This document shows positions 25,112-63,064 of a DNA stretch of 64,000 nt, one piece after another; the stretch's first letter is position 1, and every line of letters starts with the position of its first letter. The notes beneath the pieces are model-generated. The model was not told the origin of the DNA, made no database searches, and saw only the letters and a list, made by a program, of their open reading frames with translations. Source of the DNA: Macrostomum lignano (lineage: Eukaryota); contig NIVC01001363.1 of NCBI GenBank assembly GCA_002269645.1, positions 1 to 64,000 on the forward strand, written 5' to 3'. Position numbers and translations under genes: made by a program.

Positions 25112-25158
25112 TATCGCTAACGCTGAATGACGCCACCAGACGGACAAGACTGTGAGAA

Positions 25159-34440: not shown

Positions 34441-34659
34441 CAATAAGCGGGTTCTGCAATTACGAGTAGAGATCGGAGCGAAGAAGGCGGAAAGGAACGG
34501 AGTCTCAATCTCATCCACCTCTCCAGTCTCATCACATCAGTCTCACTTTTTAATGTGACAGAAGGCCCGCCAGACTTACAGACGCGGCGCAAGGACGCAA
34601 CCGGTTCGTGGAGTGAACTCAGATCCTCCCCGAGATTCCCCACCGCAGCTCTCGAGGCC

Positions 34660-34730
34660 TCAGCCAATGGCGGCAGCGCTGCGGCAAAACTCAAAGCGCT
34701 CAGTAGCGAGTTGCGGGGCCATAAATCACA
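34660..34730 (+). promoter_or_regulatory. CCAAT + ATAAA promoter-like module (copy P1)
   Basis: AGCCAATGG (34664) and CCATAAATCAC (34721). The same module recurs at 41311/41367 and, inverted, at about 55270-55340 and 62550-62750. Confidence 0.4.
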
Positions 34731-34884
34731 GGTGGGCAGCCGCTTTGACAAACAGCAGCTCACATCCCGCACGATCTGCAGGTGTGGACTCTTAGCTTTC
34801 TTTTCCTCATTTTTAGCAACTTGTCTACCAGTTCAGTCTCAGTTACAACAGGTTTCAGACATGCAGAGCAGCTTGTCACACAGA

Positions 34885-35480
34885 TTGGCAGAGGGGGTGG
34901 GGGATCAGCAGGGGGTCAGATTAGCAGAGGGTTGCGGATTGGCAGAGGGTGAGAAGGGGTGGATTGGCAGAGGAGGCGGATTGGCAGAGGGGGCGGATTG
35001 GCAGAGGGGGCGGATTGGCAGAGGGGTCGGATTGGCAGAAGGGCAGATTGGCATTAGCAGGGGGGGCGGATTGGCAGAGGGGGCGGATTGGCAGAGGGGG
35101 CGGATTGGCAGAGGGGTCGGATTGGCAGAAGGGCAGATTGGCATTAGCAGGGGGGGGGCGGATTGGCAGAGGGGCGGATTGGCAGAGGAGGCGGATTGGC
35201 AGAGGGGGCGGATTGGCAGAGGGGTCAGATTGGCAGAGGGGGCGGATTGGCAGAGGAGGCGGATTGGCAGAGGGTGAGAAGGGGCGGATTGGCCGAGGGG
35301 GCGGATTGGCAGAGGGGGCGGATTGGCAGAGAGGCGTATTGGCAGAGGGGGCGAATTGGCAGAGGAGGCGGATTGGCAGAGGGGCAGATTATCAAAATCG
35401 GTGGCAGCAAACGAAAGTTCTGCCAATCCGCCCCTCTGCCAATCCGCCCCTTCATCCAATCCACCCCCTCTGCCAATCCG
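34885..35480. repeat. 16-17-bp minisatellite GGATTGGCAGAGGGGC (GC-box fused to inverted CCAAT)
   Basis: The repeating junction reads GGGGCGGATTGG. The last units are inverted. The counterpart array is at 61765-62360. Confidence 0.95.
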
Positions 35481-35859
35481 CCGCTCTCATATTGACCTTA
35501 CCTCTGATGTGAGAAACTGAGAAATGCAGAGGAAAATAAATCATTTCACTGTCAGATCTTCGGGTGTCGCGAAGCAAGTTGAAGCAAGGCTTAGAATTGG
35601 ACAGGACCACCCATGGAGAGGGACAATGGGAATGACAGCTTTTGGCTCCGCTTCTGCATTCTTCCACTCTGACTTCCCTCTCACTCACCTTCAAATGAAA
35701 TAGTAAAGCTCAGACAAGGACTTCTAGAGCTAGCGCCATGCTATTTTGCACCTGAGCTATTTTTAGGAGTCCCCGGCTCAGATCATGGAGTCCCACCTGG
35801 TGTTAACAACGCCGGCGATCTTCACTTAAAAATGTAAAGAAACCGAAAAGCCTATTCTG

Positions 35860-36467
35860 GCTCTCCCTCTACCTCTCCCTCTCCCTCTCTCTTCCTCTCC
35901 TTCTCCCTCTCCCTCTCCCTCTCCTTCTCCCTCTCCATCTCCCTCTTCCTCTCCCTCCCTTCTCTCTCTCCCTCTTCTCCCTCTCCCTCTCCCTCTCCTT
36001 CTCCCTCTCCATCTCCCTCTTCCTCTCCCTCCCTTCTCTCTCTCCCTCTTCTCCCTCTCCCTCTCTCTTCCTCTCCTTTTCCCCCTCCCTCTTCATCTCC
36101 CTCTTCCTCTCCCTCTCCCTCTCCCTCTCCCTCTCTCTCCCTCTTCCTCTCTCTTCCTCTCCCTCTCCCTCTCTTCACCCTCTCCCTCTCTCTTCCTCTC
36201 CTTCTCCCTCTCCCTCTCCCTCTCCTTCTCCCTCTCCATCTCCCTCTTCCTCTCCCTCCCTTCTCTCTCTCCCTCTTCTCCCTCTCCCTCTCTCTTCCTC
36301 TCCTTTTCCCCCTCCCTCTTCATCTCCCTCTTCCTCTCCTTCTCCCTCTCCCTCTCTCTCCCTCTTCCTCTCCTTCTCCCTCACCCCCTCTCTCTCCCTC
36401 TTCCTCTCCCTCTCCCTCTCTTCTTCCTCTCCCTCTCCCTCTCTTCACCCTCTCCCTCTCCCTCCCC
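35860..36467. repeat. CT-rich low-complexity tract (mirror at 61063-61385)
   Basis: Polypyrimidine tract; length differs between the arms. Confidence 0.92.
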
Positions 36468-37334
36468 ATGCAACACAAAACCTCGAACTTTCACTTCTCT
36501 CCCTCAGCTGCCCTCACCCAATTCAAATCTCACTGCTCCTCAGGCCGGCATGGCAACTCCCAGATCGCTCGAGTCTCTCCAGCAGCCGCAGACACCTGGG
36601 CTGGTCGAGAGGCGACCGCGAATTCCCGCTTGGAAACCGCTTGGCAACGGAGAGCCGTCTCCAGCTGCAGCCAGCCTGCGGCCTCTCAACCCCGCTACCC
36701 TCAACCTTTAAGTCCACCTGGAAGTCGAGCCTTCAAACCGGTTCGAAAACCCAGAGCTGGCCTTAGCAACCGCCGCAGACCCACCTACCTGTGGAGTCTC
36801 AACTCGACTGATTCTAAAAATAGCACAGCCGGCAGTGCAGGCGTCCTTGAACCTCACGCAAGGAGCAAGGACCCGAATAACTTTTGGTCTGTCCTTGCGG
36901 ACCCTCAGCCACTGAGGCCCATCCCTCTGTGTAATATCCCAAGCTTTATTTAGCGTTAATTTCAGTCTTAAAACAAGCGCTGCATCTTTTTAATGAATTC
37001 AACAAAATTTAGCAAAGATAATTGCATAGAAAATATTTACTAAGGCTTTGTACAAAGCAGCATATTGAGTTTATTTTATCCTACTTATATTAACTGAATG
37101 TAATTACAAGTGGGCAAAAATTACTGGTTGTTATACTTTTAAAGTCATGCAGCTGAGCAAGAAAGTTGCGGTTATTTGCTTTGAAAATTACAAGCAGACA
37201 ACTATAGAATCGTGTAACTCATGCAAAATTGAAGATGTAAGAAGCGATTCGGAAACAGTTTGGCCTTAAATGTGCAATCGAAATATTTTATGCGATGCGC
37301 CGATGGGAAATCAATTCAGAAGAGAGGCAAAAGC

Positions 37335-37790
37335 AAGGGGTCAAGGGAGTCATTAGGGTCAAGGGGAGTCAGTGGAGTCAAAGGGAGTCAGTGGGGTCAA
37401 GGGGAGTCAGTGGGGTCAAAGGGAGTCAGTGGGGTCAAGGGGAGTCAGTGGGGTCAAGGGAGTCAGTGGGGTCAAGGGGAGTCAGTAGGGTCAAGGGCAT
37501 TCAGTGGGGTCAAGGGAGTCAGTGGGGTCAAGGGGATTCAGTGGGGTCAAGGGGAATCAGTGGGGTCAAGGGGAGTCAGTGGGGTCAAGGGGAGTTAGTG
37601 GGGTCAAGGAGAGTCAGTGGGGTCAAGGGGATTCAGTGGGGTCAAGGGGAATCAGTGGGGTCAAGGGGAGTCAGTGGGGTCAAGGAGAGTCAGTGGGGTC
37701 AAGGGGAGTCAGTGGGGTCAAGGGAGTCAGTGGGGTCAAGGGGATTCAGTGGGGTCAAGGGGAGTTAGTGGGGTCAAGGAGGGTTAGTGG
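37335..37790. repeat. 19-20-bp minisatellite GGGGTCAAGGGGAGTCAGT (mirror at 59785-60192)
   Basis: Tandem periodicity. Confidence 0.94.
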
Positions 37791-37959
37791 AATAAAGGTC
37801 AGCGATGCAATTGAGGATTACAAGTACTTGGTACATTTTTTGTAAACAAAAATGAGCGCATCCGACGTCCTTAGTTCGATTCGCGTGCTATGTAACAGTA
37901 AGGCAACAGTAATAGTAACTCTTTCAACTCAAAATCATAATTTTTTAGAGGCCTTCTCT

Positions 37960-38135
37960 AGGGGTGTCCGGGGTGCCGCTGTCTTGGGTGTCCTGGGGTG
38001 CCGCTGTCTTGGGGTGTCCTGGGGTGCCGCTATCTTGGGTGTCCTGGGGTGCCGCTGTCTTGGGTGTCCTGGGGTGCCGCTGTCTTGGGTGTCCTGGGGT
38101 GCCGCTGTCTTGGGTGTCCTGGGGTGCCGCTGTCT
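37960..38135. repeat. 25-26-bp minisatellite CTGGGGTGCCGCTGTCTTGGGTGTC just 3' of the TIS11-like stop (mirror at 58785-59608)
   Basis: About 7 units on the left arm versus about 32 on the right. Confidence 0.94.
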
Positions 38136-38154
38136 CTTCGGGTGTCTTCCATGT

Positions 38155-40095
38155 TCAGTGCAGAAAGGCGCATCGGCGGCCGAACCTGCAGTGCCCCGAG
38201 CTGAAGGCCAGGCAAGGCACGGTGCGGTACAGTGGGTGTCGAACCACCGACCTCAGCTCGGATTTTCCGTGGGCGAACCGGCACTTCGGACCGTAAGGAC
38301 AGCTGCCGCTCTCCTGCGATGGCGATTTCGGTGGGCCATGAGTATGACCGGGCTGAGGCTATCTATGACCCATGCCTGGCCTATGATGCCCATGACCTAT
38401 AATATCATGACCTATGCCTGGCCTATGATGCCCATGACCTAATATCTATGACCTATACCTGGCCTATGATGCCCATGACCTATAATATCATGACCTATGC
38501 CTGGCCTATGATGCCCATGACCTAATATCTAAGATCTATACCTGGCCTATGATGCCCATGACCTATAATATCATGACCTATGCCTGGCCTATGATGCCCA
38601 TGACCTAATATCTAAGATCTATACCTGGCCTATGATGCCCATGACCTAAAATCTATGACCTATACCTGGCCTATGATGCCCATGACCTATAATATCATGA
38701 CCTATGCCTGGCCTATGATGCCCATGACCTAATATCTATGACCTATACCTGGCCTATGATGCCCATGACCTATAATATCATGACCTATGCCTGGCCTATG
38801 ATGCCCATGACCTAATATCTAAGATCTATACCTGGCCTATGATGCCCATGACCTAATATCTATGACCTATACCTGGCCTATGATGCCCATGACCTATATT
38901 TGGCATTTGATGCCCATGACCTATAATATCGTGACCTATACTACCAATTACTTATAATACTTATGACCTATACTTTCTATGACTACTAGCCTCTCCGACG
39001 ACCAATCTATATGACCATCACTGTATTCCAACCCATTTATATGACCATCAATCCATATGAGCATCAATCTCGATGAGCACCCACTTCTATGACCATAAAT
39101 CTCAATAACCAGAAGCCACTATGACGATCAATATCTATGTCCATCACACCATACGACCACGAATTTTTATGACAATCCTGTGACCATCAGCCTCCATGAC
39201 CATCAATCCATGACTACGAATCGTCATGACCCATCAGTCTGTGGCTCTCAGACCCTATGACCATTAAACCCTATGCTTTACCAATGCATTTCTATAAGCC
39301 AAGATGCAGTCTACTTCGCACTCACAGAGTAGTTCAGGCAGAGTTCTGTTTTGTACTTCTCAGTGTCCAAGTCTCTTCTCCTTGAGCCCTCCTGTTCCTC
39401 CAGCAGCAGGTCGCTGACCAGCCGATCGATGAGGCAGAAAGTGTCTTCGTCCGTGATGACACTGGCTTGCTCTGAAATATGAAATTTGGATGATGATTGT
39501 TTGGGATTATTGGCTGAGTTCTAATGTGTTGGGTATGTTGTAAACATGTGTTGTGACTCCAGACTTGATGTGTGCTGAATGTGTTCTGAATGTGTTCTGA
39601 ATGTGTGCTGAATGTGTACTGAATGTGTACTGAATGTGTGCTGAATGTGTACTGAATGTGTGCTGAATGTGTACTGAATGTGTGCTGAATGTGTACTGAA
39701 TGTGTGCTGAATGTGTACTGAATGTGTGCTGAATGTGTACTGCATGTGTTCTGAATGTGTGCTGAATGTGTGCTGAATGTGTGCTGAATGTGTTCTGAAT
39801 GTGTGCTGAATGTGTACTGAATGTGTACTGAATGTGTGCTGAATGTGTGCTGAATGTGTACTAAATGTGTGCTGAATGTGTGCTGAATGTGTGCTGAATG
39901 TGTGCTGAATGTGTTCTGAATGTGTGCTGAATGTGTTCTGAATGCGTACTGAATCTGTAAAAAATGGGTGCTAAATGTGCAATAAATTCGATGAGCTGTC
40001 AATCAAAAATCCAGGTGCAGCAGAATTTGCTTACCTTCGCTCAGTCGCAGCTCTCCATAGGCGGTCAATCCGGAACTGGAACTGCAGCTGCTCAT
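38155..40095 (-). CDS. TIS11/ZFP36-family tandem CCCH zinc-finger protein, left-arm copy; exons 40095-40035, 39471-39326, 38313-38155; 121 aa
   Basis: The spliced product ends [12 protein letters not shown]|[52 protein letters not shown]. It has the KYKTEL lead-in, CX8CX5CX3H, an 18-aa linker and CX7CX5CX3H. GT-AG sites have matching phases (1, 0). Confidence 0.95.
38350..38950. repeat. about 40-bp ATGACC-rich minisatellite in TIS11-like intron 2 (mirror at about 58070-58560)
   Basis: Unit TATACCTGGCCTATGATGCCCATGACCTAATATCTATGACC, decaying into a degenerate ATGACC tract up to about 39290. Confidence 0.92.
39570..39950. repeat. 10-bp minisatellite CTGAATGTGT in TIS11-like intron 1 (mirror at 56703-57390)
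   Basis: Tandem periodicity; about 38 units versus about 68. Confidence 0.95.
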
Positions 40096-40184
40096 GGCTG
40101 GCTATCAAAATTGCTGAGCTGTGGTGAAAAGTTGAGTAGTGAGTTCGGATGATTTTCAGTTTCAAGCCGCACAGATCCTCAGTC

Positions 40185-40230
40185 CGCTTTTATCGCCTTT
40201 GAAGGGAGGGGACGCCTCCTGAGCCAATGG
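40185..40230 (-). promoter_or_regulatory. putative core promoter of the left TIS11-like gene
   Basis: CCAAT at 40224 and GATAAAA (minus strand, 40194-40188) lie about 95-130 nt upstream of the ATG. Both are conserved in the right arm and in the spacer copy. Confidence 0.4.
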
Positions 40231-40354
40231 GAGAAGCATGGAGAACCTCCGGGCCCCTTGAACCCCTCCCTCACCTTAGCGAATGGGAATCGCCCAGTTT
40301 CGAGCAAGCTTTGGGGTGAATAAAACTTGTAAAGAAACTGGTGGCTGAGTGAAA

Positions 40355-41075
40355 ATCCGCCCCTCTGACACTCCTCAATCCGCCCCTCTGACACTCCTCA
40401 ATCCGCCTCTCTGACACTCCTCAATCCGCCCCTCTGACACTCCTCAATCCGCCCCTCTGACACTCCTCAATCCGCCCCTCTGACACTCCTCAATCCGCCC
40501 CTCCGACACTCCCTAATCCGCCCCTCTGACACTCCTCAATCCGCCACTCTGACACTCCTCAATCCGCCACTCCGACACTCCCCAATCCACCCCTCTGACA
40601 CTCCTCAATCCGCCCCTCTGACACTCCCCAATCCACCCCTCTGACACTCCTCAATCCGCCCCTCTGACACTCCCCAATCCACCCCTCTGACACTCCTCAA
40701 TCCGCCCCTCTGACACTCCTCAATCCGCCCCTCTGACACTCCTCAATCCGCCCCTCTGACACTCCTCAATCCGCCCCTCTGACACTCCTCAATCCGCCCC
40801 TCTGACACTCCCCAATCCGCCCCTCTGACACTCCTCAATCCGCCCCTCTGACACTCCTCAATCCGCCCCTCTGACACTCCTCAATCCGCCCCTCTGACAC
40901 TCCTCAATCCGCCCCTATGACACTCCCCAATCCGCCCCTCTGACACTCCTCAATCCGCCCCTCTGACACTCCTCAATCCGCCCCTATGACACTCCCCAAT
41001 CCGCCCCTCTGACACTCCTCAATCCGCCCCTCTGACACTCCTCAATCCGCCACTCCGACACTCCCCAATCCGCCC
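40355..41075. repeat. 23-bp minisatellite (minus-strand unit GAGGGGCGGATTG(A/G)GGAGTGTCA) between the divergent TIS11-like and nanos genes
   Basis: About 31 units here, about 23 at 55570-56100 and about 8 at 50842-51033. Confidence 0.95.
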
Positions 41076-41614
41076 CAGTTTGCGAATTCGAGTCCGGGAA
41101 AAAAAGGGCGGCTCGGGAAATCCCACCAGACTTTGAGACGCCGTGCAGGGAAGCAGCAGGCAAAGCGTGGGCGGCCAGCATTTCGTGCGGGGGACTCGCA
41201 CTGATCCTCCACAACCGCAACCTCAGCCAGGACTCAACCCCCGCAGATCCCCGCAGACTCCGGCTGCCTGTCTGCGGTCGGCCTCAGCTCCGACCTGCGA
41301 GCTCTCAAAGCCAATGGCGGAGCGCTGCGGCAAAACTCAAAGTGCTCAGTAGCGAGATGCGGGGCCATAAATCACAGGTGGGCAGCACAAACAGCAGCTC
41401 ACACCTCACACCAGCTGCCTGCGTGGAATCAAAGCCCGGGCTTGCAAGCTGTCTGTAGGGTGGTGCATGTACTTTTAAACTCACCGCTTACAGTTGATCA
41501 AACACTAAACTACTAAAGTTTAGTTGAGTTGGTTTTGCTGCACTTTGGTCTTTGTTGGAATTAGAAAACTAACAGCTGTGTGAATTAGCTTTTTGGGTTC
41601 ATGTCATTCAAATT

Positions 41615-41995
41615 GAGGTTCAGGTCATTCAGATTGAGGTTCAGGTCATTGAGATTAAGGCTCAGGTCATTCAGATTGAGTTTCAGGTCATTCAGATTGA
41701 GGCTCAGGTCATTCAGATTGAGGTTCAGGTCATTCAGATTGAGTTTCAGGTCATTCAGATTAAGTTTCAGGTCATTCAGATTGAGGCTCAGGTCATTCAG
41801 ATTGAGGCTCAGGTCATTCAGATTGAGTTTCAGGTCATTCAGATTAAGTTTCAGGTCATTCAGATTGAGGCTCAGGTCATTCAGATTGAGTTTCAGGTCA
41901 TTCAGATTGAGGTTCAGGTCATTCAGATTGAGGTTCAGGTCATTGAGATTGAGGTTCAGGTCATTGAGATTGAGGTTCAGGTCATTCAGATTGTG
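41615..41995. repeat. 21-bp minisatellite TCAGGTCATTCAGATTGAGG(T/C) (mirror at 54290-55050; pieces at 49925-50055 and 50455-50700)
   Basis: Tandem periodicity; source of the spurious LNLNLND and FRSFRLR ORFs. Confidence 0.94.
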
Positions 41996-42364
41996 GCTTA
42001 TAGGTATTGCTCGTAACCGTATTTTACAGAAGAAAATCAATTGGATTTAAACTGCGCAGGACCACCCATTGGGAAAGACAATGGGAATGACAGCTTTTGG
42101 CTCCGCTTCTGAATTCTTCACTCTGACTTCTCTCTCTCTCAGTCTCTCTCTCTTAGTCTCTCTCTCGCAACAACCACCCCACCATGCGCACTGAAGAGGG
42201 GACGCCAAGCGTACACACAAACAAGGGGGTGCAAGGCACACGACTAACCCTAACACCCTCTAATAGAATTGGGGAGGTCAGATCATGGAGTCCCGGTGTT
42301 AACCAAGCCAGCATGCTTTACTTTAAAATGTAAAGAAAATGAAAATCCCTTCTGACTCTCCTCT

Positions 42365-42735
42365 CCCTGGCCCTCTCGCTTTCCCTCTCCTCTCCGCCCC
42401 TCTCCGCCCCTCTCCACCCCTCTCCGCCGCTCTCCGCTCCTCTCCGCCCCTCTCCACCCCTCTCCGCCCCTCTCCGCTCCTCTCCGCCTCTCTCCGCTCC
42501 TCTCCGCCCTTCTCCGCTCCTCTCCGCCCCTCTCCGCTCCTCTCCGCCCCTCTCCGCTCCTCTCCGCCCCTCTCCGCCCTTCTCCGCCCCTCTCCTCTCC
42601 TCTCCGCCCCTCTCCGGCCCTCTCAGGCCCTCTCCGGCCCTCTATGCCTCTCTCCACCTCTCTCCGTCCCTCTCCGCCCCTCGCTGTCCCTCTCCGGCCC
42701 ACTCCGCCTCTCTCCGCCCCTCTCCGCCCCTCACC
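42365..42735. repeat. 11-bp CTCTCCGCCCC-type minisatellite (mirror at 53585-54150)
   Basis: Tandem periodicity; contains repeated CCGCCCC GC-boxes. Confidence 0.92.
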
Positions 42736-43471
42736 GCGCTTTAAACAACTCCAATCTCCTCTCCTCTCTCTCAATCTTCCTTTCGCTCCTCAGGCCGGCA
42801 TTGCAACTCCCAGATCGCTCGAGTCGCTCCAGCAGCCGCAGCCACCTGGGCTGGCCGAGAGGCGACCGCGAATTCCCGCTTGGAAACCGCTTGGCAACGG
42901 AGAGCCGTCTCCAGCTGCAGCCAGCCTGCGGCCTCTCAGCTCCGTCACCCCCTTCCCAATCCGAGTCTCGTTTGGTTGCTGGGGCCATGGGAGTTGGGAG
43001 ACGGCCTGGAGACGCGTCAGTCTGAGATGGCCAGTCGAGTCCACCTGTGTAAAGCTGAGTTCTCGGCATCTCAACATTTCAAGATGGAATTGTATAAATG
43101 TATGCTAAAAATCAGGATTCTTTTTAAGTTTCAAGCTGCATAAATACTGAACTCCTGCTCAAGAAACTCAATTGTCAGTTGTGAAGAAAATATTCAGCTT
43201 TAAAATGAGAGAAAGACTGTGAAAACTGTGAAAACTTTGAACTGGCCTCGACTGTCACTGCCATGCAGTATTCTGTCTCCACCCTCTGTCTCCACCCCCA
43301 GTGAAAGCGCGTCAGCCAATAGCAGGCCGCCTCACACCCACAGGTGAAGATGATTGTCCGCATGGAGTATATTAGAGTGAATAATTTCTCAGATCTCAGG
43401 CAGACTAATTCCAATTCTAGGCTAACTGAAATCCGCAACCTACAGCTTCACCCAGCTTCTCTGCCTCATCA

Positions 43472-44629
43472 ATGCAGCCGTCAAGGAATCGCAGCTTCAT
43501 TGGCCTGAGGTGAGTTCTGAAAGCAGGTTTGAGTACAGGTGTCAGATTTATGCATATAAACTGACAATTAATCGCATCACTTCCTATTTTCTTTGTGTAT
43601 TTTTTGCGTGTGTTGCGTAGTTTTACCACTTTTAAATATAAGCCCGGCCCCTTCTCTATCTCACTTCTCTCCTATCCTATCTCTCTCTCCTATCTCGCTC
43701 TTCCAATTTTACGACCGATTAAAACTGCCACTGTCCGCCTGTTGCTAAATTTAGCTCTCTGTTAGCCCATTCTTTGTTATTTGTCCCACTAGTAATGGGA
43801 CAACAGGGCATGCTTTTGAGACCTACTTAGCTCAGCAGTGTATAACCTCCCTGCCGTCCTGATCAAGCCTAAATATAAAACTTCCCTGCACTCTCATCAC
43901 AGCCCGCGGGTAGCTGGAGAGGAACCGCTTCCCATTGTGAAGCACATTCTGCAGCTGCAGAATCAGTACCTGCAGTACCTGCGGCAGCAGACTGACACCC
44001 AGCAGCAGCTCCAGGTCGAGACCCAGCAGCAGCACGAGCTCGAGACCCAGCAGCAACTCCAGCTCGAGACCCAGCAGCAGCTCAAGCTCGAGACCCAGCA
44101 GCAGCTCCAGCTCGAGACCCAGCAGCAGCTCCAGCTCGAGACCCAGCAGCAGCTCCAGCTCGAGACCCAGCAGCAGCTCCAGCTCGAGACCCAGCAGCAG
44201 CACCATTTCGAGACCCAGCAGCAACTCCAGCTCGAGACCCAGCAGCAGCTCAAGCTCGAGACCCAGCAGCAGCTCCAGCTCGAGACCCAGCAGCAGCTCC
44301 AGCTCGAGACCCAGCAGCAGCTCCAGCTCCAGTTCCAGCCCGCTGCCGCCCCGCTGCCCAACGCCGCCCTGCAGCGCGCGGTGCTCGCCAGGAACGCCAG
44401 CCGGCCGCGCCGCCCCGTCTTCTGCGTCTTCTGCCGCAAGAACGGCGAGCCGGAGGCCTTCAGCAGCGGCCACACCCTGAAGGACGGCAACGGCAGCGTC
44501 GCCTGCCCGGTGCTCAGCCGCTTCACCTGCCCGCTGTGCGGCGCCACCGGCGGCAGCGCCCACACCGTGAAATACTGCCCGCTGGGCACCGGCCACGGCT
44601 GCGGCCGCAGGAAACTGACAGGACAGTGA
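43472..44629 (+). CDS. nanos: Nanos-family (CCHC)2 zinc-finger protein, left-arm copy; exons 43472-43509 and 43903-44629; 254 aa with 14 (LQLETQQQ) repeats
   Basis: [53 protein letters not shown] is the Nanos domain. ATG at 43472 with a phase-2 AG|GTGAGT donor fits the phase of the CATCACAG|C acceptor (765 nt in total). An upstream acceptor at 43445 leaves room for a further 5' exon. Confidence 0.92.
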
Positions 44630-51248: not shown

Positions 51249-51249
51249 G

Positions 51250-51685: not shown

Positions 51686-51853
51686 AGGAAAATCGCGGAG
51701 GCGCGATCAGGAAATGTAAGGTTTTTTGGAAGCAGTTCTTGAGGTGCTTTGTGAAGCTGCTGTGTTAAACGACTTATAGACTTCGGTCGGGGTCAGTCAG
51801 TCAGTCAGTCAGTCAGGCTGGGCCTCAAAGCAGGCTTCACAGCAGGGTTTGTC

Positions 51854-52588: not shown

Positions 52589-53518
52589 TCACTGTCCTGT
52601 CAGTTTCCTGCGGCCGCAGCCGTGGCCGGTGCCCAGCGGGCAGTATTTCACGGTGTGGGCGCTGTCGCCAGTGGCGCCGCACAGCGGGCAGGTGAAGCGG
52701 CTGAGCACGGGGCAGACGACGCTGCCGTTGCCGTCCTTCAGGGTGTGGCCGCTGCTGAAGGCCTCCGGCTCGCCGTTCTTGCGGCAGAAGACGCAGAAGA
52801 CGGGGCGGCGCGGCCGGCTGGCGTTCCTGGCGAGCACCGCGCGCTGCAGGGCGGCGCGGCCGGCTGGCGTTCCTGGCGAGCACCGCGCGCTGCAGGCCGG
52901 CGTTGGGCAGCGGGGCGGCAGCGGGCTGGAACTGGAGCTGGTGCTGCTGCTGGGTCTCGAGCTGGAGCTGCTGCTGGGTCTCGAGCTGGTGCTGCTGCTG
53001 GGTCTCGAGCTGGAGCTGCTGCTGGGTCTCGAGCTGGTGCTGCTGCTGGGTCTCGAGCTGGAGCTGCTGCTGGGTCTCGAGCTGGAGCTGCTGCTGGGTC
53101 TCGAGCTGGAGCTGCTGCTGGGTCTCGAGCTGGTGCTGCTGCTGGGTCTCGAGCTGGAGCTGCTGCTGGGTCTCGAGCTGGTGCTGCTGCTGGGTCTCGA
53201 GCTGGAGCTGCTGCTGGGTTTCGAGCTGGAACTGCTGCTGGGTCTTGAGCTGGTGCTGCTGCTGGGTCTCGAGCTGGAGCTGCTGCTGGGTCTCGAGCTG
53301 GTGCTGCTGCTGGGTCTCGAGCTGGAGCTGCTGCTGGGTCTCGAGCTGGAGCTGCTGCTGGGTCTCGAGCTGGAGCGGCTGCTGGGTGTCAGTCTGCTGC
53401 CGCAGGTACTACAGGTACTGATTTTGCAGCTGCAGGAGTTCAGTGTTCGCGGTCGCCTCTCGGCCAGCCCAGGTGGCTGCGGCTGCTGGAGCGACTCGAG
53501 CGATCTGGGAGTTGCCAT
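52589..53518 (-). CDS. nanos: rearranged nanos copy: intronless 309-aa ORF with a Ser-rich N-terminus and an intact Nanos zinc finger (function uncertain, possibly a pseudogene)
   Basis: ATG at 53518, then about 19 (SSSSSSRP) units, then CVFCRKNGE...[28 protein letters not shown]. The ancestral Gln frame has a TAG (53412-53410) and a 46-bp duplication (52805-52896). Confidence 0.65.
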
Positions 53519-56500
53519 GCCGGCCTGAGGAGCGAAAGGGAGATTGAGAGAGAGGAGAGGAGATTGGAGTTGTTTAAAGCGCGGTGAGGGGCGGAGAGGG
53601 GCGGAGAGAGGCGGAGTGGGCCGGAGAGGGACAGCGAGGGGCGGAGAGGGACGGAGAGAGGTGGAGAGGGGCGGAGAGGGGCGGAGAGGGGTGGAGAGAG
53701 GCGGAGAGGAGAGGAGAGGGGCGGAGAGGGGCGGAGAGGGCCGGAGAGGGGCGGAGAGGGGCGGAGAGAGGCGGGGAGGGCCGGAGAGGGGCGGAGAGGG
53801 GTGGAGAGAGGCGGAGACGGCCGGAGAGGGGTGGAGAGGGGCGGAGAGGGCCGGAGAGGGGTGGAGAGTAAAGGAGAGGGGCGGAGAAGGGGCGGAGACG
53901 GGCGGAGAGGGGCGGGGAGGGACGGAGAGAGGCGGAGAGGGGCGGAGAGGGCCGGAGAGGGCCGAAGAGGGGCGGAGAGTAGAGGAGAGGGGCGGAGAGG
54001 GGCGGAGAGGGACGGAGAGGGGCGGAGAGAGGCGGAGAGGGGTGGAGAGGGCCGGATAGGGCCGGAGAGGGCCGGAGAGGGCCGGAGAGGGCCGGAGAGG
54101 GCCGGAGAGAAGAGGAGAGAAGAGGAGAGAAGAGGAGAGGGGCGGAGAGGTAGAGGTTGAGTTAGAAAGGCGAGGGAAAGCGAGAGGGCGAGGGAAAGGA
54201 GATGGAGAGGTAGAGTCAGAAGAGATTTTCAGTTTCTTGATATTTTGAAGTGAGCTGGCTGCTCTCCAAACATCGGGACTCCATGATTTTGAACCTGAAT
54301 CTGAATGACCAGAAACTCAATCTGAATGACCTGAACCTCAATCTGAATGACCTGAACCTCAATCTGAATGACCTGAACCTCAAGTTGAATGACCTGAACC
54401 TCAATCTGAATGACCTGAACCTCAATCTGAATGACCTGAAACTCAATCTGAATGACTTGAGCCTCAATCTGAATGACCTGAAACTCAATCTGAATGACAT
54501 GAAACTCAATCTGAATGACCTGAGCCTCAATCTCAATGACCTGAGCCTCAATCTAAATGACCTGAACCTCAATCTCAATGACCTGAAACTCAATCTGAAT
54601 GACCTGAGCCTCAATCTGAATGACCTGAGCCTCAATCTGAATGACCTGAACCTCAATCTGAATGACCTGAAACTCAATCTGAATGACCTGAGCCTCAATC
54701 TGAATGACCTGAACCTCAATCTCAATGACCTGAACCTCAATCTGAATGACCTGAAACTCAATCTGAATAACCTGAGCCTCAATCTGAATGACCTGAACCT
54801 CAATCTGAATGACCTGAAACTCAATCTGAATGACCTGAACCTCAATCTGAATGACTTGAACCTCAAGTTGAATGACCTGAACCTCAATCTGAATGACCTG
54901 AACCTCAATCTGAATGACCTGAGCCTCAATCTGAATGACCTGAACCTCAATCTGAATGACCTGAGCCTCAATCTGAATGACCTGAACCTCAATCTGAATG
55001 ACCTGAGCCTCAATCTGAATGACCTGAACTTCAATCTGAATGACCTGAACCCAAAAAGCTAATTCACACAGCTGTTAGTTTTCCAATTCCAACAAAGACC
55101 AAAGTGCAGCAAAACCAACTCAACTAAACTTTAGTAGTTTAGTGTTTGATCAACTGTAAGCGGTGAGTTTAAAAGTACATGCACCACCCTACAGACAGCT
55201 TGCAAGCCCGGGCTTTGATTCTACACAGGCAGCTGGTGTGAGGTGTGAGCTGCTGTTTGTGCTGCCCACCTGTGATTTATGGCCCCGCATCTCGCTACAG
55301 AGCACTTTGAGTTTTGCCGCAGCGCTCCGCCATTGGCTTTGAGAGCTCGCAGGTCGGAGCTGAGGCCGACCGCAGACAGGCAGCCGGAGTCTGTGGGGAT
55401 CTGCGGTGGGGAGTCCTGGCTGGGGTTGCGGTGGGGAGGATCAGTGCGAGTCCCCCGCACGAAATGCTGGCCGCCCACGCTTTGCCTGCTGTTTCCCTAC
55501 ACGGCGTCTCAAAGTCTGGTGGGATTTCCCGAGCCGCCCTTTTGGTTCCCGGACTCGAATTCGGAAACTGGGGCGGATTGGGGAGTGTCAGAGGGGCGGA
55601 TTGAGGAGTGTCAGAGGGGCGGATTGAGGAGTGTCAGAGTGGCGGATTGAGGAGTGTCAGAGGGGCGGATTGAGGAGTGTCAGAGGGGCGGATTGGGGAG
55701 TGTCAGAGTGGCGGATTGAGGAGTGTCAGAGGGGCGGATTGGGGAGTGTCAGAGGGGCGGATTGGGGAGTGTCAGAGGGGCGGATTGGGGAGTGTCAGAG
55801 GGGCGGATTGAGGAGTGTCAGAGTGGCGGATTGAGGAGTGTCAGAGGGGCGGATTGGGGAGTGTCAGAGTGGCGGATTGGGGAGTGTCGGAGGGGCGGAT
55901 TGGGGAGTGTCAGAGGGGCGGATTGGGGAGTGTCGGAGGGGCGGATTGGGGAGTGTCGGAGGGGCGGATTGAGGAGTGTCAGAGTGGCGGATTGAGGAGT
56001 GTCAGAGGGGCGGATTGGGGAGTGTCGGAGGGGCGGATTGAGGAGTGTCAGAGGGGCGGATTGAGGAGTGTCAGAGGGGCGGATTGAGGAGTGTCAGAGT
56101 GACATGAAGTGTGTCAGAGTGAATTCCCCAAATCCATTTGAGGAAATAGTTTCATAGCTTCGTTTTCATTTGATTCATGGTGTCATCGTGTCATTTCCTT
56201 AATTTTGCTTTCTGCTGCTTTTTCGCAATGCTTTGCCTTACCTTATGAGAGGGGGTCATCAGAACGGGATGTCTCTTATCTCCAGAAAGTTAAGCATTGA
56301 TTTTCACTCAGCCACCAGTTTCTATACAAGATTTATTCACCCCAAAGCTTGCTCGAAACTGGGCGATTCCCATTCGCTAAGGTGAGGGATTGGTTCAAGG
56401 GGCCCGGAGGTTCTCCTTGCTTCCCCCATTGGCTCAGGAGGCGTCCCCTCCCTTCAAAGGCGATAAAAGCGGCCTGAGGATCTGTGCGGCTTGAAACTGA

Positions 56501-56560
56501 AAATCACCCGAACTCACTACTCAACTTTTCACCACAGCTCAGCAATTTTGATAGCCAGCC

Positions 56561-58766
56561 ATGAGCAGCTGCAGTTCCAGTTCCGGATTGACCACCTATG
56601 GAGAGCTGCGACTGAGCGAAGGTAAGCAAATTCTGCTGCACCTGGATTTTTGATTGACAGCTCATTGAGTTTATTGCACATTTAGCACCCATTTATTACA
56701 GATTCAGTACGCATTCAGCACACATTCAGCACACATTCAGAACACATTCAGCACACATTCAGAACACATTCAGCACACATTCAGCACGCATTCAGAACAC
56801 ATTCAGCACACATTCAGCACACATTCAGCACACATTCAGAACACATCTACACACATTCAGAACACATCTACACACATTCAGAACACATTCAGCACACATT
56901 CAGCACACATTCAGCACACATTCAGCACACATTCAGCACACATTCAGAACACATTCAGTACACATTCAGTACACATTCAGAACACATTCAGAACACATCT
57001 ACACACATTCAGCACACATTCAGCACACATTCAGCACACATTCAGAACACATTCAGCACACATTCAGAACACATTCAGCACACATTCAGTACACATTCAG
57101 CACACATTCAGTACACATTCAGAACACATTCAGTACACATTCAGTACACATTCAGCACACATTCAGCACACATTCAGCACACATTCAGTACACATTCAGT
57201 ACACATTCAGCACACATTCAGAACACATCTACACACATTCAGCACACATTCAGAACACATCTACACACATTCAATACACATTCAGCACACATTCAGCACA
57301 CATTCAGCACACATTCAGTACACATTCAGTACACATTCAGTACACATTCAGTACGCATTCAGCACACATTCAGTACACATTCAGAACACATAAAGTCTGG
57401 AGTCACAAGACATGTTTACAACATACCCAACACAGTAGAACTCAGCCAATAATTCCAAACAATCATCATCCAAATTTCATATTTCAGAGCAAGCCAGTGT
57501 CATCACGGACGAAGACACTTTCTGCCTCATCGACAGGCTGGTCGGCGACCTGCTGCTGGAGGAACAGGAGGGCTCAAGGAGAAGAGACTTGGACAATGAG
57601 AAGTACAAAACAGAGCTCTGCCTGAACTACTCTGTGAGTGCGAAGTAGACTGCATCTTGGCTTATAGAAATGCATTGGTAAAGCATAGGGTTTAATGGTC
57701 ATAGGGTCTGAGAGCCACAGACTGATGGGTCATGACGATTCGTAGTCATGGATTGATGGTCATGGAGGCTGATGGTCACAGGATTGTCATAAAAATTCGT
57801 GGTCGTATGGTGTGATGGACATAGATATTGATCGTCATAGTGGCTTCTGGTTATTGAGATATTTGGTCATAGAAGTGGGTGCTCATCGAGGTTGATGCTC
57901 ATTGCTCGAGGTTGATGGATTGATGGTCATATAGATGGGTTGGAATACAGTGATGGTTATATAGATGGGTTGCAATACAGTGATGGTCATATAGATTGGT
58001 CGTCGGAGAGGCTAGTAGTCATAGAAAGTATAGGTCATATGTATTATAAGCCATTGGTAGTATAGGTCACGATATTATAGGTCATGGACATCAGAGGCCA
58101 AATATAGGTCATGGGCATTATAGGCCAGGTATAGGTCATAGATATTAGGTCATGGGCATTATAGGCCAGGTATAGGTCATAAATATTAGGTCATGGGCAT
58201 CATAGGCCAGGTATAGGTCATAGATATTAGGTCATGGGCATCATAGGCAAGGTATAGGTCATAGTTATTAGGTCATGGGCATCATAGGCCAGGCATAGGT
58301 CATGATATTATATTATAGGTCATGGCCATCATAGGCCAGGTATAGGTCATAGATATTAGGTCATGGGCATCATAGGCCAGGCATAGGTCATGATATTATA
58401 GGTCATGGGCATCATAGACCAGGTATAGGTCATAGATATTAGGTCATGGGCATCATAGGCCAGGTATAGGTCATAGATATTAGGTCATGGGCATCATAGG
58501 CCAGGTATAGGTCATAGATATTAGGTCATGGGCATCATAGGCCAGGTATAGGTCATAGATAGCCTCAGCCCGGTCATACTCATGGCCCACCGAAATCGCC
58601 ATCGCAGGAGAGCGGCAGCTGTCCTTACGGTCCGAAGTGCCGGTTCGCCCACGGCAAATCCGAGCTGAGGTCGGTGGTTCGACACCCACTGTACCGCACC
58701 GTGCCTTGCCTGGCCTTCAGCTCGGGGCACTGCAGGTTCGGCCGCCGATGCGCCTTTCTGCACTGA
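56561..58766 (+). CDS. TIS11/ZFP36-family tandem CCCH protein, right-arm copy; exons 56561-56621, 57488-57633, 58608-58766; 121 aa
   Basis: Same structure as the left copy with splice sites intact. Seven substitutions in 366 nt by eye (4 synonymous, 3 replacements, all outside the fingers). Confidence 0.95.
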
Positions 58767-61764
58767 ACATGGAAGACACCCGAAGAGACAGCGGCACCCC
58801 AGGACACCCAAGACAGCGGCACCCCAGGACACCCAAGACAGCGGCACCCCAGGACACCCCAAGACAGCGGCACCCCAGGACACCCAAGACAGCGGCACCC
58901 CAGGACACCCTAAGACAGCGGCACCCCAGGACACCCTAAGACAGCGGCACCCCAGGACACCCTAAGACAGCGGCACCCCAGGACACCCCAAGACAGCGGC
59001 ACCCCAGGACACCCAAGACAGCGGCACCCCAGGACACCCTAAGACAGCGGCACCCCAGGACACCCTAAGACAGCGGCACCCCAGGACACCCTAAGACAGC
59101 GGCACCCCAGGACACCCCAAGACAGCGGCACCCCAGGACACCCCATGACAGCGGCACCCCAGGACACCTAAGACAGCGGCACCCCAGGACACCCAAGACA
59201 GCGGCACCCCAGGACACCCTAAGACAGCGGCACCCCAGGACACCCTAAGACAGCGGCACCCCAGGACACCCTAAGACAGCGGCACCCCAGGACACCCCAA
59301 GACAGCGGCACCCCAGGACACCCAAGACAGCGGCACCCCAGGACACCCTAAGACAGCGGCACCCCAGGACACCCTAAGACAGCGGCACCCCAGGACACCC
59401 TAAGACAGCGGCACCCCAGGACACCCCAAGACAGCGGCACCCCAGGACACCCCATGACAGCGGCACCCCAGGACACCCTAAGACAGCGGCACCCCAGGAC
59501 ACCCAAGACAGCGGCACCCCAGGACACCCTAAGACAGCGGCACCCCAGGACACCCTAAGACAGCGGCACCCCAGGACACCCAAGACAGCGGCACCCCAGG
59601 ACACTCCAAGGGAAGGCCTCTAAAAAATTATGATTTTGAGTTGAAAGAGTTACTATTACTGTTGCCTTACTGTTACATAGTACGCGAATCGAACTAAGGA
59701 CGTCGGATGCGCTCATTTTTGTTTACAAAAAATGTACCAAGTACTTGTAATCCTCAATTGCATCGCTGACCTTTATTCCACTAACCCTCCTTGACCCCAC
59801 TAACTCCCCTTGACCCCACTGACTCCCCTTGACCCCACTGAATCCCCTTGACCCCACTGACTCCCCTTGACCCCACTGAATCCCCTTGACCCCACTGACT
59901 CCCTTGACCCCACTGACTCCCCTTGACCCCACTGACTCCCTTGACCCCACTGAATGCCCTTGACCCTACTGACTCCCCTTGACCCCACTGACTCCCTTGA
60001 CCCCACTGACTCCCCTTGACCCCACTGACTCCCCTTGACCCCACTGACTCCCTTTGACTCCACTGACTCCCCTTGACCCTAATGACTCCCTTGACCCCAC
60101 TGACTCCCTTTGACCCCACTGACTCCCCTTGACCCCACTGACTCCCTTTGACTCCACTGACTCCCCTTGACCCTAATGACTCCCTTGACCCCTTGCTTTT
60201 GCCTCTCTTCTGAATTGATTTCCCATCGGCGCATCGCATAAAATATTTCGATTGCACATTTAAGGCCAAACTGTTTCCGAATCGCTTCTTACATCTTCAA
60301 TTTTGCATGAGTTACACGATTCTATAGTTGTCTGCTTGTAATTTTCAAAGCAAATAACCGCAACTTTCTTGCTCAGCTGCATGACTTTAAAAGTATAACA
60401 ACCAGTAATTTTTGCCCACTTGTAATTACATTCAGTTAATATAAGTAGGATAAAATAAACTCAATATGCTGCTTTGTACAAAGCCTTAGTAAATATTTTC
60501 TATGCAATTATCTTTGCTAAATTTTGTTGAATTCATTAAAAAGATGCAGCGCTTGTTTTAAGACTGAAATTAACGCTAAATAAAGCTTGGGATATTACAC
60601 AGAGGGATGGGCCTCAGTGGCTGAGGGTCCGCAAGGACAGACCAAGAGTTATTCGGGTCCTTGCTCCTTGCGTGAGGTTCAAGGACGCCTGCACTGCCGG
60701 CTGTGCTATTTTTAGAATCAGTCGAGTTGAGACTCCACAGGTAGGTGGGTCTGCGGCGGTTGCTAAGGCCAGCTCTAGGTTTTCGAACCGGTTTGAAGGC
60801 TCGACTTCCAGGTGGACTTAAAGGTTGAGGGTAGCGGGTTGAGAGGCCGCAGGCTGGCTGCAGCTGGAGACGGCTCTCCGTTGCCAAGCGGTTTCCAAGC
60901 GGGAATTCGCGGTCGCCTCTCGGCCAGCCCAGGTGTCTGCGGCTGCTGGAGCGACTCGAGCGATCTGGGAGTTGCCATGCCGGCCTGAGGAGCAGTGAGA
61001 TTTGAATTGGGTGAGGGCAGCTGAGGGAGAGAAGTGAAAGTTCGAGGTTTTGTGTTGCATGGGGAGGGAGAGGGAGAGGGTGAAGAGAGGGAGAGGGAGA
61101 GGGAGAAGAGAGGGAGAGGGAGAGGGTGAAGAGAGGGAGAGGGAGAGGGTAAAGTAGAGGAAGAGGGAGAGAGAGAGAGGAAGAGGGAGAGAGAGGGAGA
61201 GGGAGAAGGAGAGGGAGAGGGAGAGGGAGAAGAGAGGGAGAGGGAGAGGGTGAAGAGAGGGAGAGGGAGAGGGAGAGAGAGAGGGAGAGGGTAAAGTAGA
61301 GGGAGAGGGAGAGGGAGAGGGAGAGGGTGAAGAGAGGGAGAGGGAGAGGGAGGGGGAAAAGGAGAGGGAGAGAGAGGTAGAGGGGAGCCAGAATAGGCTT
61401 TTCGGTTTCTTTACATTTTCAAGTGAAGATCGCCGGCGTTGTTAACACCAGGTGGGACTCCATGATCTGAGCCGGGGACTCCTAAAAATAGCTCAGGTGC
61501 AAAATAGCATGGCGCTAGCTCTAGAAGTCCTTGTCTGAGCTTTACTGTTTCATTTGAAGGTGAGTGAGAGGGAAGTCAGAGTGGAAGAATTCAGAAGCGA
61601 AGCCAAAATCTGTCATTCCCATTGTCCCTCTCCATGGGTGGTCCTGTCCAATTCTAAGCCTTGCTTCAACTTGCTTCGCGACACCCGAAGATCTGACAGT
61701 GAAATGATTTATTTTCCTCTGCATTTCTCAGGTTCTCGCATCAGCTGTAAGGTCAATATGAGAG

Positions 61765-62360
61765 CGGCGGATTGGCAGAGGGGGCGGATGGGCAGAGGGG
61801 GCGGATTGGCAAAGGGGGCGGATTGGCAGAAGGGAGCGGATTAGCAGAGGGGGCGGATTGGCAGAGGGAACGGAGAGGGGGCGGATTGGCAGAGGGGGCG
61901 GATTGGCAGAGGGGAGCGGATTGGCAGAGGGACGGATTGGCAAAGGGGGCGGATTGGCAAAGGGGGCGGATTGTCAGAGGGGCGGATTGGATGAAGGGGC
62001 GGATTGGCAGAGGGGCGGATTGGCAGAGGGGCGGATTGGATGAAGGGGCGGATTGGCAGAGGGGCGGATTGTCAGAGGGGCGGATTGACAGAGGGGCGGA
62101 TTGGCAGAGGGGCGGATCGGCAGAGGGGCGGATTGGCAGAGGGGCCGATTGACAGAGGGGCGGATTGGCAGAGGGGCGGATCGGCAGAGGGGCGGATTGG
62201 CAGAGGGGCCGATTGACAGAGGGGCGGATTGGCAGAGGGGCGGATTGACAGAGGGGCGGATTGGCAGAGGGGCGGATCGGCAGAGGGGCGGATTGGCAGA
62301 GGAGCGGATTGGCAGAGGAGCGGATTGGCAGAGGGGGCGGATTGGCAGAGAGGGGCAGAT
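61765..62360. repeat. 16-17-bp minisatellite GGATTGGCAGAGGGGC, right arm
   Basis: Same unit as 34885-35480. Confidence 0.94.
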
Positions 62361-63064
62361 TATCAAAATCGGTGGCAGCAAACGAAAGTTCTGCCAATCT
62401 GTGTGACAAGCTGCTCTGCATGTCTGAAACCTGTTGTAACTGAGACTGAACTGGTAGACAAGTTGCTAAAAATGAGGAAAAGAAAGCTAAGAGTCCACAC
62501 ACGCAGCTCGTGCGGGATGTGAGCTGCTGCTTGTCAAAGCGGCTGCCCACCTGTGATTTATGGCCCCGCAACTCGCTACTGAGCGCTTTGAGTTTTGCCG
62601 CAGCGCTGCCGCCATTGGCTGAGGCATAGAGATCTAGAACTAGAATTAGAACTACTGGTGAGCTAGAACTACATGTAGAACTACTAGATCTAGATTTCCT
62701 TGGCTGAGGCTTTGAGTTTTGCCGCAGCGCTGCCGCCATTGGCTGAGGCCTCGAGAGCTGCGGTGGGGAATCTCGGGGAGGATCTGAGTTCACTCCACGA
62801 ACCGGTTGCGTCCCTGCGCCGTCTATAAGTCTGGCGGGCCTTCCCGAGCTGTCACATTAAAAATATCCCTGTGCATGTTTGCTATAAATTGTTTTAAACT
62901 GCAAATCGCCGCAGAAATTGCTTAAAATCCAAAACCGGTGTGAAGAGAGGATCTGTGTAGATAAAAAATTGAGCTGAATTTAGTAACAGATTTCACAGGT
63001 GGGTCAGCGTTTGTTGCTAAGTGCAGCACTGGGGTTTTGAGGACCAAAGCAAGAGGGAAGCAGA

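Follow-up and report, generated by a model that had tools for sequence, protein, structure and literature searches.

A 64,000-nucleotide (nt) stretch of the Macrostomum lignano genome (contig NIVC01001363.1 of assembly GCA_002269645.1; hereafter the window, to which all positions refer) contains a large inverted duplication in which genes of the nanos family are found next to small genes for tandem CCCH zinc-finger (TZF) proteins. We interpret this locus as a lineage-specific nanos/TZF cluster that was built by tandem and then by inverted duplication and that is now partly decaying, a reading to which we assign a probability of about 0.62. An earlier note on this DNA had proposed that the two families are physically linked and have multiplied together, and this is borne out by the presence of three TZF genes and three nanos sequences (one intact, one damaged, and one relic) within 29 kb.

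Structure of the Inverted Duplication

The window is so densely packed with tandem arrays, for which Tandem Repeats Finder reported 67 rows over its whole length, that the raw repeat picture is blurred. A self-BLAST search of the raw sequence yielded a collinear chain of inverted blocks of up to 2020 nt at 93.8% identity, and with the arrays masked, the outer ends are at positions 34561 and 62843 and the inner ends at 45006 and 52298 (Table 1). Both the palindrome that the earlier note had placed at 34547-62863 and its estimate of about 10.5 kb for each arm agree with the masked ends and the measured arm lengths. Between 30 and 64 kb, a repeat search identified 200 inverted pairs, far above chance, the longest of which spans 751 nt at 100% identity (36691-37441 and 60088-60838). 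Tandem arrays occupy 13,218 of the 28,283 bp (47%) of the inverted structure.

Over the 4,558 nt of unique sequence that were aligned with arrays masked, the two arms are 96.2% identical. The identity is patchy, with values of 94-97.6% in most blocks and 74% at the inner ends. The highest similarity is found in a tract of 1.9 kb that contains the 751-nt stretch and in which all three unique blocks are nearly identical. This tract spans the last exon of the TZF gene and its flank to the first ATTAAA/AATAAA signals, which are located 1.16-1.20 kb downstream of the gene in the left arm and 1.77-1.81 kb downstream in the right arm.

Table 1. Positions of the arms, genes, gene remnants, and neighboring features in the window (aa, amino acids)
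Feature	Position	Strand	Description
Left arm of inverted duplication	34561-45006		10,446 bp; collinear inverted BLAST chain, tandem arrays masked
Right arm of inverted duplication	52298-62843		10,546 bp; collinear inverted BLAST chain, tandem arrays masked
Spacer	45007-52297		7.3 kb; third TZF gene, TZF-promoter relic, 334-bp direct repeat
Near-identical tract between arms	36470-38359 (right counterpart 58562-61058)		Unique blocks 99.4-99.6% identical
Left-arm TZF gene	38155-40095	-	Exons 40095-40035, 39471-39326, 38313-38155; 121 aa
Right-arm TZF gene	56561-58766	+	Exons 56561-56621, 57488-57633, 58608-58766; 121 aa
Spacer TZF gene	48189-48947	+	Exons 48189-48305, 48783-48947
Promoter-like region of spacer TZF gene	46250-46360	+	Two ATTGG boxes and TATAAAA
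Relic of arm-TZF upstream region and core promoter	50705-51247	+	94-98% identity to 55435-55763 and 56299-56515
Left-arm nanos gene	43316-44629	+	Two exons, 254 aa, promoter motifs, Pfam zf-nanos
24-bp minisatellite in nanos exon 2	43997-44329	+	13.9 copies, in frame as (LETQQQLQ)n
Right-arm counterpart of nanos minisatellite	52935-53387		18.9 copies, read in another frame
Right-arm nanos remnant	52589-53518	-	Zinc finger intact at 52804-52592
nanos relic outside left arm	34037-34447	+	5' part of exon 2, 76% identity to 43889-44049
nanos 3' untranslated region tandem motif	44636-44710; 34214-34327; 52575-52588		CTGCACTCTTAACAC
Two SNAPC1 exons	29870-31368	-	Pfam 7.8e-15 and 1e-6
Ankyrin-repeat exon	25156-25494	+	Ank_2 1.8e-11
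Possible N-myristoylated EF-hand-type first exon	~15303-15427	-	MGNAIGPRKK...QWYRGF; no Pfam match

Tandem CCCH Genes of the Arms

The TZF loci were located by six-frame motif scans and tblastn followed by reading of the DNA, and all gene models presented here were built solely from splice consensus and reading frame. The introns of the three-exon genes in the two arms are all of the GT-AG type, with the donors GTAAGC and GTGAGT and the acceptors TTTCAG and TCGCAG, and their phases (phase 1 for intron 1 and phase 0 for intron 2) match between the arms. Intron 2 interrupts zinc finger 1, between the residues CLNYS and ESGSC. Upstream of the ATG there is an ATTGGCT box at about 135 bp and a GATAAAAG element at about 100 bp. 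Of the 366 coding nucleotides, 7 are not the same in the two copies (three non-synonymous and four synonymous differences), and despite this coding divergence of about 2%, the open reading frame (ORF), the promoter motifs, and all splice sites, which are identical, are intact in both.

The arm proteins have an acidic, hydrophobic N-terminus, which precedes a canonical finger 1 (C-x8-C-x5-C-x3-H) with the lead-in KYKTELC. A linker of 18 residues separates it from finger 2, which has the spacing C-x7-C-x5-C-x3-H and the lead-in LYRTVPC. Pfam zf-CCCH was matched in two stretches with an E-value of 1.1e-15. All three TZF ORFs in the window terminate right after the last zinc-finger histidine (FLH and a stop codon), a site that contains no GT donor, and a C-terminal CNOT1-binding motif, by which RNA binding is linked to deadenylation, was not found in any of them. 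We infer that the proteins are RNA-binding-domain-only members of the TTP/TIS11 type, a family that binds AU-rich elements of the UAUUUAU type.

Intact, Damaged, and Relic nanos Sequences

In the left arm, the nanos gene and the TZF gene are arranged head-to-head with 3377 bp between their start codons at 43472 and 40095, in agreement with the spacing of about 3.4 kb given in the earlier note. The claim that each arm carries such a pair stands in so far as a spliced TZF gene and a nanos zinc finger are present in both arms, and fails for the right nanos copy, which is damaged.

The left nanos gene has an AGCCAAT box at 43316 and a TATATTA element near 43368. The coding part of exon 1 (43472-43509) is followed by the donor GTGAGT at 43510, and exon 2 (43903-44629) is preceded by the acceptor CATCACAG, which ends at 43902 and has been kept in the relic. 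The zf-nanos domain (PF05741, cut-off 27 bits) was identified with 83.1 bits (E-value 1.6e-23) in the left copy and 86.2 bits (E-value 1.8e-24) in the right copy. In both, a regular-expression search recovered the two fingers C-x2-C-x12-H-x10-C and C-x2-C-x7-H-x4-C, and none of the eight zinc ligands varies when the sequences are aligned with those of six other animals. The zinc-finger domain is 48-60% identical to those of other animals, and its matches in PDB include the Nanos proteins of zebrafish (3ALR, 2.4e-19) and Drosophila (5KL1, 2.6e-18). The NOT1-interacting motif (NIM) of vertebrates, F-x-x-W-x-D-Y-x-x-L, was not found in the 254 residues of the left nanos model. This motif, which recruits CCR4-NOT, defines vertebrate Nanos only, and its absence does not exclude membership of the family.

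About a third of the left nanos protein is encoded by a 24-bp minisatellite in exon 2. The repeat is open in all frames: its translation is LETQQQLQ in the intact gene, and the ORF of the damaged copy reads it as SSRPSSSS. By analogy with the family, in which Nanos works together with Pumilio to silence target mRNAs in germ cells, the product of the left gene would be a CCHC zinc-finger translational repressor with a Q-rich tract of 8-residue repeats.

The right nanos copy has no equivalent of the left-arm segment 42873-43948, so that promoter, exon 1, and intron are missing from it together with the initial 46 nt of exon 2. In the ancestral frame, a CAG codon has been changed into TAG, and the sequence just before the finger contains a frame-shifting duplication of 46 bp. 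The copy keeps an ATG-initiated ORF of 309 amino acids (53518-52589) solely by way of the repeat being read in the other frame, from which the 46-bp duplication returns it to the frame of the finger. An exact-product look-up of this ORF retrieved no record. Two synonymous and two non-synonymous differences separate the left and right finger domains. At one position in the second finger, the right copy has the consensus Asp of animals and the left copy a derived Gly.

The nanos relic that the earlier note had reported just beyond the left arm was recovered as well. It consists of the CACAG/CCCG acceptor and the start of exon 2, joined straight to sequence that resembles the 3' untranslated region (3'UTR), and the repeat tract and the zinc finger have been deleted. 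Since the start of exon 2 is retained both in the relic and in the diverged paralogue A0A1I8JQP0 (see below), the structure of the left-arm nanos gene is ancestral and the deletion occurred on the right. The nanos 3'UTR opens with a short tandem motif (about CTGCACTCTTAACAC) that occurs three to four times on the left, once on the right, and in a higher number in the relic; it is possibly a regulatory element or mere slippage. No UAUUUAU, AUUUA, UGUANAUA, Pumilio-type or miR-430-type motifs were found in the nanos 3'UTRs.

A Third TZF Gene in the Spacer

The spacer contains the third CCCH gene of the earlier note, for which two exons were delimited (Table 1). Over the finger domain, its product is 58% identical to those of the arm genes, and its intron has the same position and phase within finger 1. 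Both fingers are canonical (C-x8-C-x5-C-x3-H), with the lead-ins KFKTELC and LYKTEPC and a linker of 19 residues. The best PDB matches were the C3H1 protein 9Y10 (6e-21), TIS11d (1RGO, 1.2e-20), and TTP (1M9O, 3e-18).

Enumeration of the possible cis ATG exons for this gene yielded none that joins the best acceptor in frame, and a trans-splicing model was therefore considered. A 35-nt spliced leader, CGGTCTCTTACTGCGAAGACTCAATTTATTGCATG, is carried by about 30% of the M. lignano genes, with [T/C]TNCAG as the top acceptor motif (PMC8629364), and its terminal ATG probably acts as a start codon (PMC10468722). The acceptor of the spacer gene (TTTCAG/TCC, phase 0) fits this motif. Addition of the spliced-leader ATG results in an uninterrupted ORF of 94 amino acids, and the same addition to exon 2 of the arm TZF genes or of nanos runs into stops. 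The spacer gene is thus most likely matured by trans-splicing of a spliced leader that donates its AUG, as suggested by its splice acceptor and reading frame. Transcription would start at the promoter-like region at 46.3 kb, and the following putative outron of about 1.8 kb, which contains an 18-bp array (46638-48045), would be replaced by the leader at 48188/48189.

The spacer also contains a relic of the upstream region and core promoter of the arm TZF genes, which breaks off about 45 bp short of the ATG position and enters an 18-bp array. This promoter-only relic belongs to a 2-kb block of right-arm-like pieces that is bracketed by a direct repeat of 334 bp with 100% identity (49482-49815 and 51854-52187). 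The bracketed block looks like a very recent local duplication or insertion.

Related Sequences in Public Databases

When the nanos finger and the arm TZF protein were used in word-indexed protein searches, nothing or only TZF proteins from protists and fungi were retrieved. A later, exhaustive HMMER search with the nanos finger matched animal Nanos proteins and gave 1,848 matches. Those ranked highest, at 97, 91, 90, and 62% identity, belong to M. lignano and are listed in UniProt or UniParc as "Nanos-type domain-containing proteins". Matches at 55-62% identity were considered as macrostomid orthologues and rejected; they are arthropod-type and other animal Nanos proteins.

The public M. lignano models are A0A1I8F3U0 (P0009), A0A1I8F7U6 (P0013), A0A1I8JQP0 (P0014), and UPI0007A1496E (P0012). 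They are chimeric, composed of sense, antisense, and out-of-frame pieces from 7-10 kb of this locus, and none of them is a plausible nanos protein. A0A1I8F3U0 matches the minus strand of the window exactly at 382 of 386 residues, collinearly from 55400 to 48188 (right arm into spacer), and A0A1I8F7U6 matches the plus strand exactly at 306 of 379 residues, from 41123 to about 49.7 kb (left arm into spacer). Both junctions between arm and spacer therefore exist in the assembly from which these models were derived, which may share raw reads with the assembly of the contig.

The third model, A0A1I8JQP0, represents a diverged paralogue. It contains two sense pieces of nanos, the conserved N-terminal nanos peptide AGEEPLPIVKHILQLQNRYMQYLRQQADT (26 of 29 residues), and a piece of a spacer-type TZF gene (79% identity over 39 amino acids). 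The linkage of nanos and TZF thus recurs at another locus, where the two are apparently in tandem orientation. In UPI0007A1496E, compared with the window at 36657-49749, left-type nanos sequence flanks inverted pieces of the spacer, an order that is absent from the window. The suggestion that this model is the reverse complement of the window was rejected, since in the exact mapping the sequence on either side is left-type. The model may represent a second palindromic locus or haplotype, or else an old contig that was misassembled as a fold-back.

Evolution of the Cluster

Traces of an early tandem step may be recognized within and around the left arm. The segment at 34.66-36.69 kb is repeated directly at 41.31-42.94 kb in four collinear blocks with up to 97% identity, including 34662-34740 with 41309-41386, 35602-35687 with 42057-42141, and 36535-36688 with 42785-42938 (97%). 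The nanos relic is located before the first copy of this repeat, and the intact nanos gene after the second. We interpret the relic, the direct repeat, and the divergent spacer TZF gene as probable remnants of tandem duplication. An element of about 150 bp is found at 36535-36688, 42785-42938, 46116-46225, 53446-53533, and 60840-60993, in copies that are 80-99% identical. It is located near the promoters or upstream of nanos and of the spacer TZF gene, where the copy at 46116-46225 is inverted and lies just upstream of the promoter, and at the distal end of what is putatively the 3' flank of TZF.

In the scenario that we favor, an already adjacent pair of one nanos gene and one small TZF gene would first have been copied in tandem, and a tandem array of alternating nanos and TZF genes would be the simplest account of the older state. 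A unit of about 10.5 kb would then have been copied in inverted orientation, in a minisatellite-rich and recombination-prone region, at a time that would make the inverted duplication about as old as other duplicates in the genome at about 95% identity. Later, parts would have been deleted, arrays would have expanded, and sequence would have been converted between the arms at least once in recent times, which would have homogenized the last exon and the 3' flank of the TZF gene. Both arm TZF genes and the left nanos gene would have stayed whole, and the right nanos gene would have lost its promoter and first exon. The nanos and TZF genes would thus be linked because they were duplicated together. 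A structure of this kind is not exceptional in M. lignano, since its genome is full of duplicated blocks at least 95% identical: about 180 Mb are made up of non-repetitive duplicated blocks with an identity of at least 95%, and tandem and simple repeats account for 15% of the genome (PMC5730564). A recent whole-genome duplication has also been described in this species (PMC7053086).

Several observations weigh against parts of this scenario. Constraint on a long 3'UTR, rather than gene conversion, could account for the near-identical tract, and any or all of the gene copies might be silent. The three non-synonymous versus four synonymous differences between the arm TZF genes are too few to demonstrate purifying selection. 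The right nanos copy could have been labeled a pseudogene wrongly, as it has an ORF of 309 amino acids and the consensus Asp. The older model UPI0007A1496E implies an arrangement unlike that of the window. Finally, the chance that a spliced-leader AUG is in frame at the spacer TZF gene is one in three, and trans-splicing of this gene is therefore something that we infer.

As to function, Nanos and TTP/TIS11 proteins are known as regulators of 3'UTRs that recruit CCR4-NOT, and the earlier note had built on this activity. That argument does not carry over to the arm TZF proteins, which end at the last finger histidine and would thus be unable to recruit CCR4-NOT by the C-terminal motif that TTP-type proteins use. 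Likewise, the lack of AU-rich elements (AREs), AUUUA and UGUANAUA in the nanos 3'UTRs removes the simplest model, in which the TZF proteins act directly on nanos mRNA. In all three promoter types, a TATA-like element is preceded at a distance of 35-55 bp by an AGCCAAT/ATTGGCT box, and each gene is predicted to have a CCAAT/TATA core promoter of its own. Minisatellite makes up about 45% of the intergenic sequence between TZF and nanos, with copy numbers that differ between the arms.

These features bear on the possibility that the locus is a functional cassette, in which nanos and TZF are co-expressed from a shared divergent region of 3.3 kb in germline or stem cells and act on common mRNA targets, with the palindrome preserving the copies by conversion. 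We consider this unlikely, although the head-to-head arrangement in both arms, the promoter box and TATA-like element common to all three promoter types, the recurrence of nanos with a spacer-type TZF gene in A0A1I8JQP0, and the sequence exchange indicated by the 1.9-kb tract would all fit. TZF proteins are also known to control the translation of nos-2 in Caenorhabditis elegans. In Schistosoma, spermatogenesis requires a CCCH protein that shows enrichment in nanos-1+ germline stem cells (PMC7817839), which we regard as a parallel and not as evidence for this locus. However, the arms are only 96.2% alike overall and conversion did not rescue the right nanos copy, and the presence of separate core promoters, the unequal minisatellites in the intergenic region, the nanos 3'UTRs without ARE or Pumilio-type motifs, and the TZF proteins without a CNOT1-binding tail all argue against a co-regulated unit. 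In a bolder version, which is speculative and improbable, Nanos and the "headless" TZF mini-proteins would form a conserved, divergently transcribed two-gene module in macrostomids, in which TZF would cooperate or compete with Nanos on shared germline or neoblast mRNAs, inverted duplication and conversion would preserve TZF dosage, and the minisatellite would tune the effector region of Nanos.

At the other extreme, the whole cluster might be decaying duplicated DNA in a satellite-rich region, with the working nanos and TZF genes elsewhere and the copies in the window unexpressed or about to become pseudogenes. The relic and the damaged nanos copy within 20 kb, the promoter-only TZF relic, the derived Gly in finger 2 of the left nanos, the C-x7-C spacing and degenerate YRTVPC lead-in of finger 2 in the arm TZF proteins, the array content of 47%, and a 10.5-kb satellite 24 kb away are consistent with this view. 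It is nevertheless rather improbable, given that both arm TZF genes, although about 2% divergent in coding sequence, have retained the ORF, all six splice sites, and the motifs of the promoter, that the left nanos gene has a coherent structure of two exons, scores strongly in Pfam, and has kept its eight zinc ligands, that the N-terminal nanos peptide is kept in A0A1I8JQP0, and that ordinary genes (SNAPC1 and an ankyrin-repeat gene) adjoin. An assembly artefact, in which a haplotig or homeologue would have been wrongly joined as an inverted copy or long reads would have formed a fold-back chimera, is highly improbable. M. lignano assemblies are redundant and the sequenced line has extra copies of the large chromosome (PMC5730564), and UPI0007A1496E has a conflicting order that resembles a fold-back. 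Yet fold-back chimeras yield perfect arms without a spacer, whereas this structure has a spacer of 7.3 kb with its own paralogue and arms that differ by 3.8% in sequence, by a 1.1-kb deletion, by the 46-bp duplication, and by array copy numbers. Moreover, A0A1I8F3U0 and A0A1I8F7U6 are collinear and exact across both junctions, with the reservation that they may come from the same raw reads.

Genomic Neighborhood

The first 10,504 bp of the window consist of a 22-bp satellite (AACTCTGTGTCCTTGACTGTTT) in about 480 copies with a 97% match, which continues past the window start. This satellite suggests a heterochromatic or chromosome-end neighborhood, and a literature search with it gave chance primer matches only. 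A near-100% GC content at third codon positions (GC3) was noted alongside the satellites. These features had suggested a germline-restricted chromosome of lamprey or another animal, an idea for which a literature search gave nothing and which the matches to M. lignano models refute. Two arrays of 12 bp, (TCTCACCCTGTC)n and (AGACAGGGTGAG)n at 16644-17570 and 21574-22603, are reverse complements of each other at 84-92% identity and flank a (ATCCATCT)n array at 18687-20186, which makes this a second inverted structure, composed of arrays only. A dispersed repeat at 45345-45794 has an inverted counterpart at 28311-28765 with 79% identity and is possibly a transposon fragment. Two SNAPC1 exons, an ankyrin-repeat exon, and a possible EF-hand-type first exon were recognized alongside the duplication (Table 1). 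Rfam and tRNA scans of the whole window were negative.

Significance and Comparison with Known Systems

M. lignano is a flatworm model for stem cells and the germline that is transgenic and amenable to RNA interference (RNAi). No study characterizing its nanos genes was found in the literature searched. Nor was any nanos-TIS11 cluster found there, in line with the earlier note, and the adjacency of nanos and TZF appears to be undescribed. Proteins that consist of little more than the TZF and a nanos gene with a coding minisatellite are mildly unusual, and on present evidence the locus is not a new kind of system. It provides usable nanos and TZF gene models to replace the chimeric UniProt predictions, and the several linked nanos copies in varied states of decay matter for the design of probes, RNAi, and knock-outs. 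The small family of TZF-only proteins encoded next to nanos is worth testing together with nanos, and the locus offers a concrete and easily testable hypothesis of co-regulation. For genome biology, it illustrates on a small scale a tandem duplication that was followed by an inverted one and by patchy gene conversion, in a genome that is rich in minisatellites and was recently duplicated.

The nanos proteins resemble the family members represented by 3ALR and 5KL1 in that both CCHC fingers are canonically spaced. They differ in that the N-terminal half is an in-frame 24-bp minisatellite, (LETQQQLQ)n, of variable copy number, and in having two exons, several linked copies in different states of decay, and no vertebrate-type NIM. 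The TZF proteins share two CCCH fingers with TTP/ZFP36/TIS11 and, in part, the YKTELC-type lead-ins and the standard spacing, and the spacer copy matches 1RGO and 1M9O. Unlike these, they are only 94-121 amino acids long, they end at the last finger histidine, and an intron splits finger 1; furthermore, finger 2 of the arm proteins has C-x7-C and YRTVPC, and the linker of the spacer copy has 19 residues rather than 18. Like POS-1, MEX-5/6, OMA-1/2, and PIE-1 acting on nos-2 in C. elegans, the TZF and nanos products could conceivably belong to one pathway. However, the genes in C. elegans are not clustered, and the nanos 3'UTR in M. lignano has no ARE-like motifs.

The earlier note had likened the structure to the ampliconic genes of mammalian sex chromosomes, whose palindromes have an arm identity of about 99.9% or more that is held by ongoing gene conversion. 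As in P1-P8 of the human Y chromosome and the X-linked palindromes, there is a large inverted repeat with a spacer, mirror-image gene copies, at least one exchange between the arms, and gene families that are classically used in the germline. The arms are, however, about 10 kb long, half of them is minisatellite, and one gene type has decayed in one arm. With an arm identity of 96.2%, not above 99.9%, homogenization limited to the 1.9-kb tract, and one nanos copy decayed, the analogy is not supported. Moreover, M. lignano is a hermaphrodite without sex chromosomes. A local inverted segmental duplication within a redundant genome describes the structure better. In its identity range, its repeat-rich context, and the existence of several paralogous cluster copies (A0A1I8JQP0 and possibly UPI0007A1496E), it resembles the genome-wide duplicated blocks of M. 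lignano with at least 95% identity (PMC5730564), and it differs from the homeologous blocks in being a local inverted duplication inside one contig.

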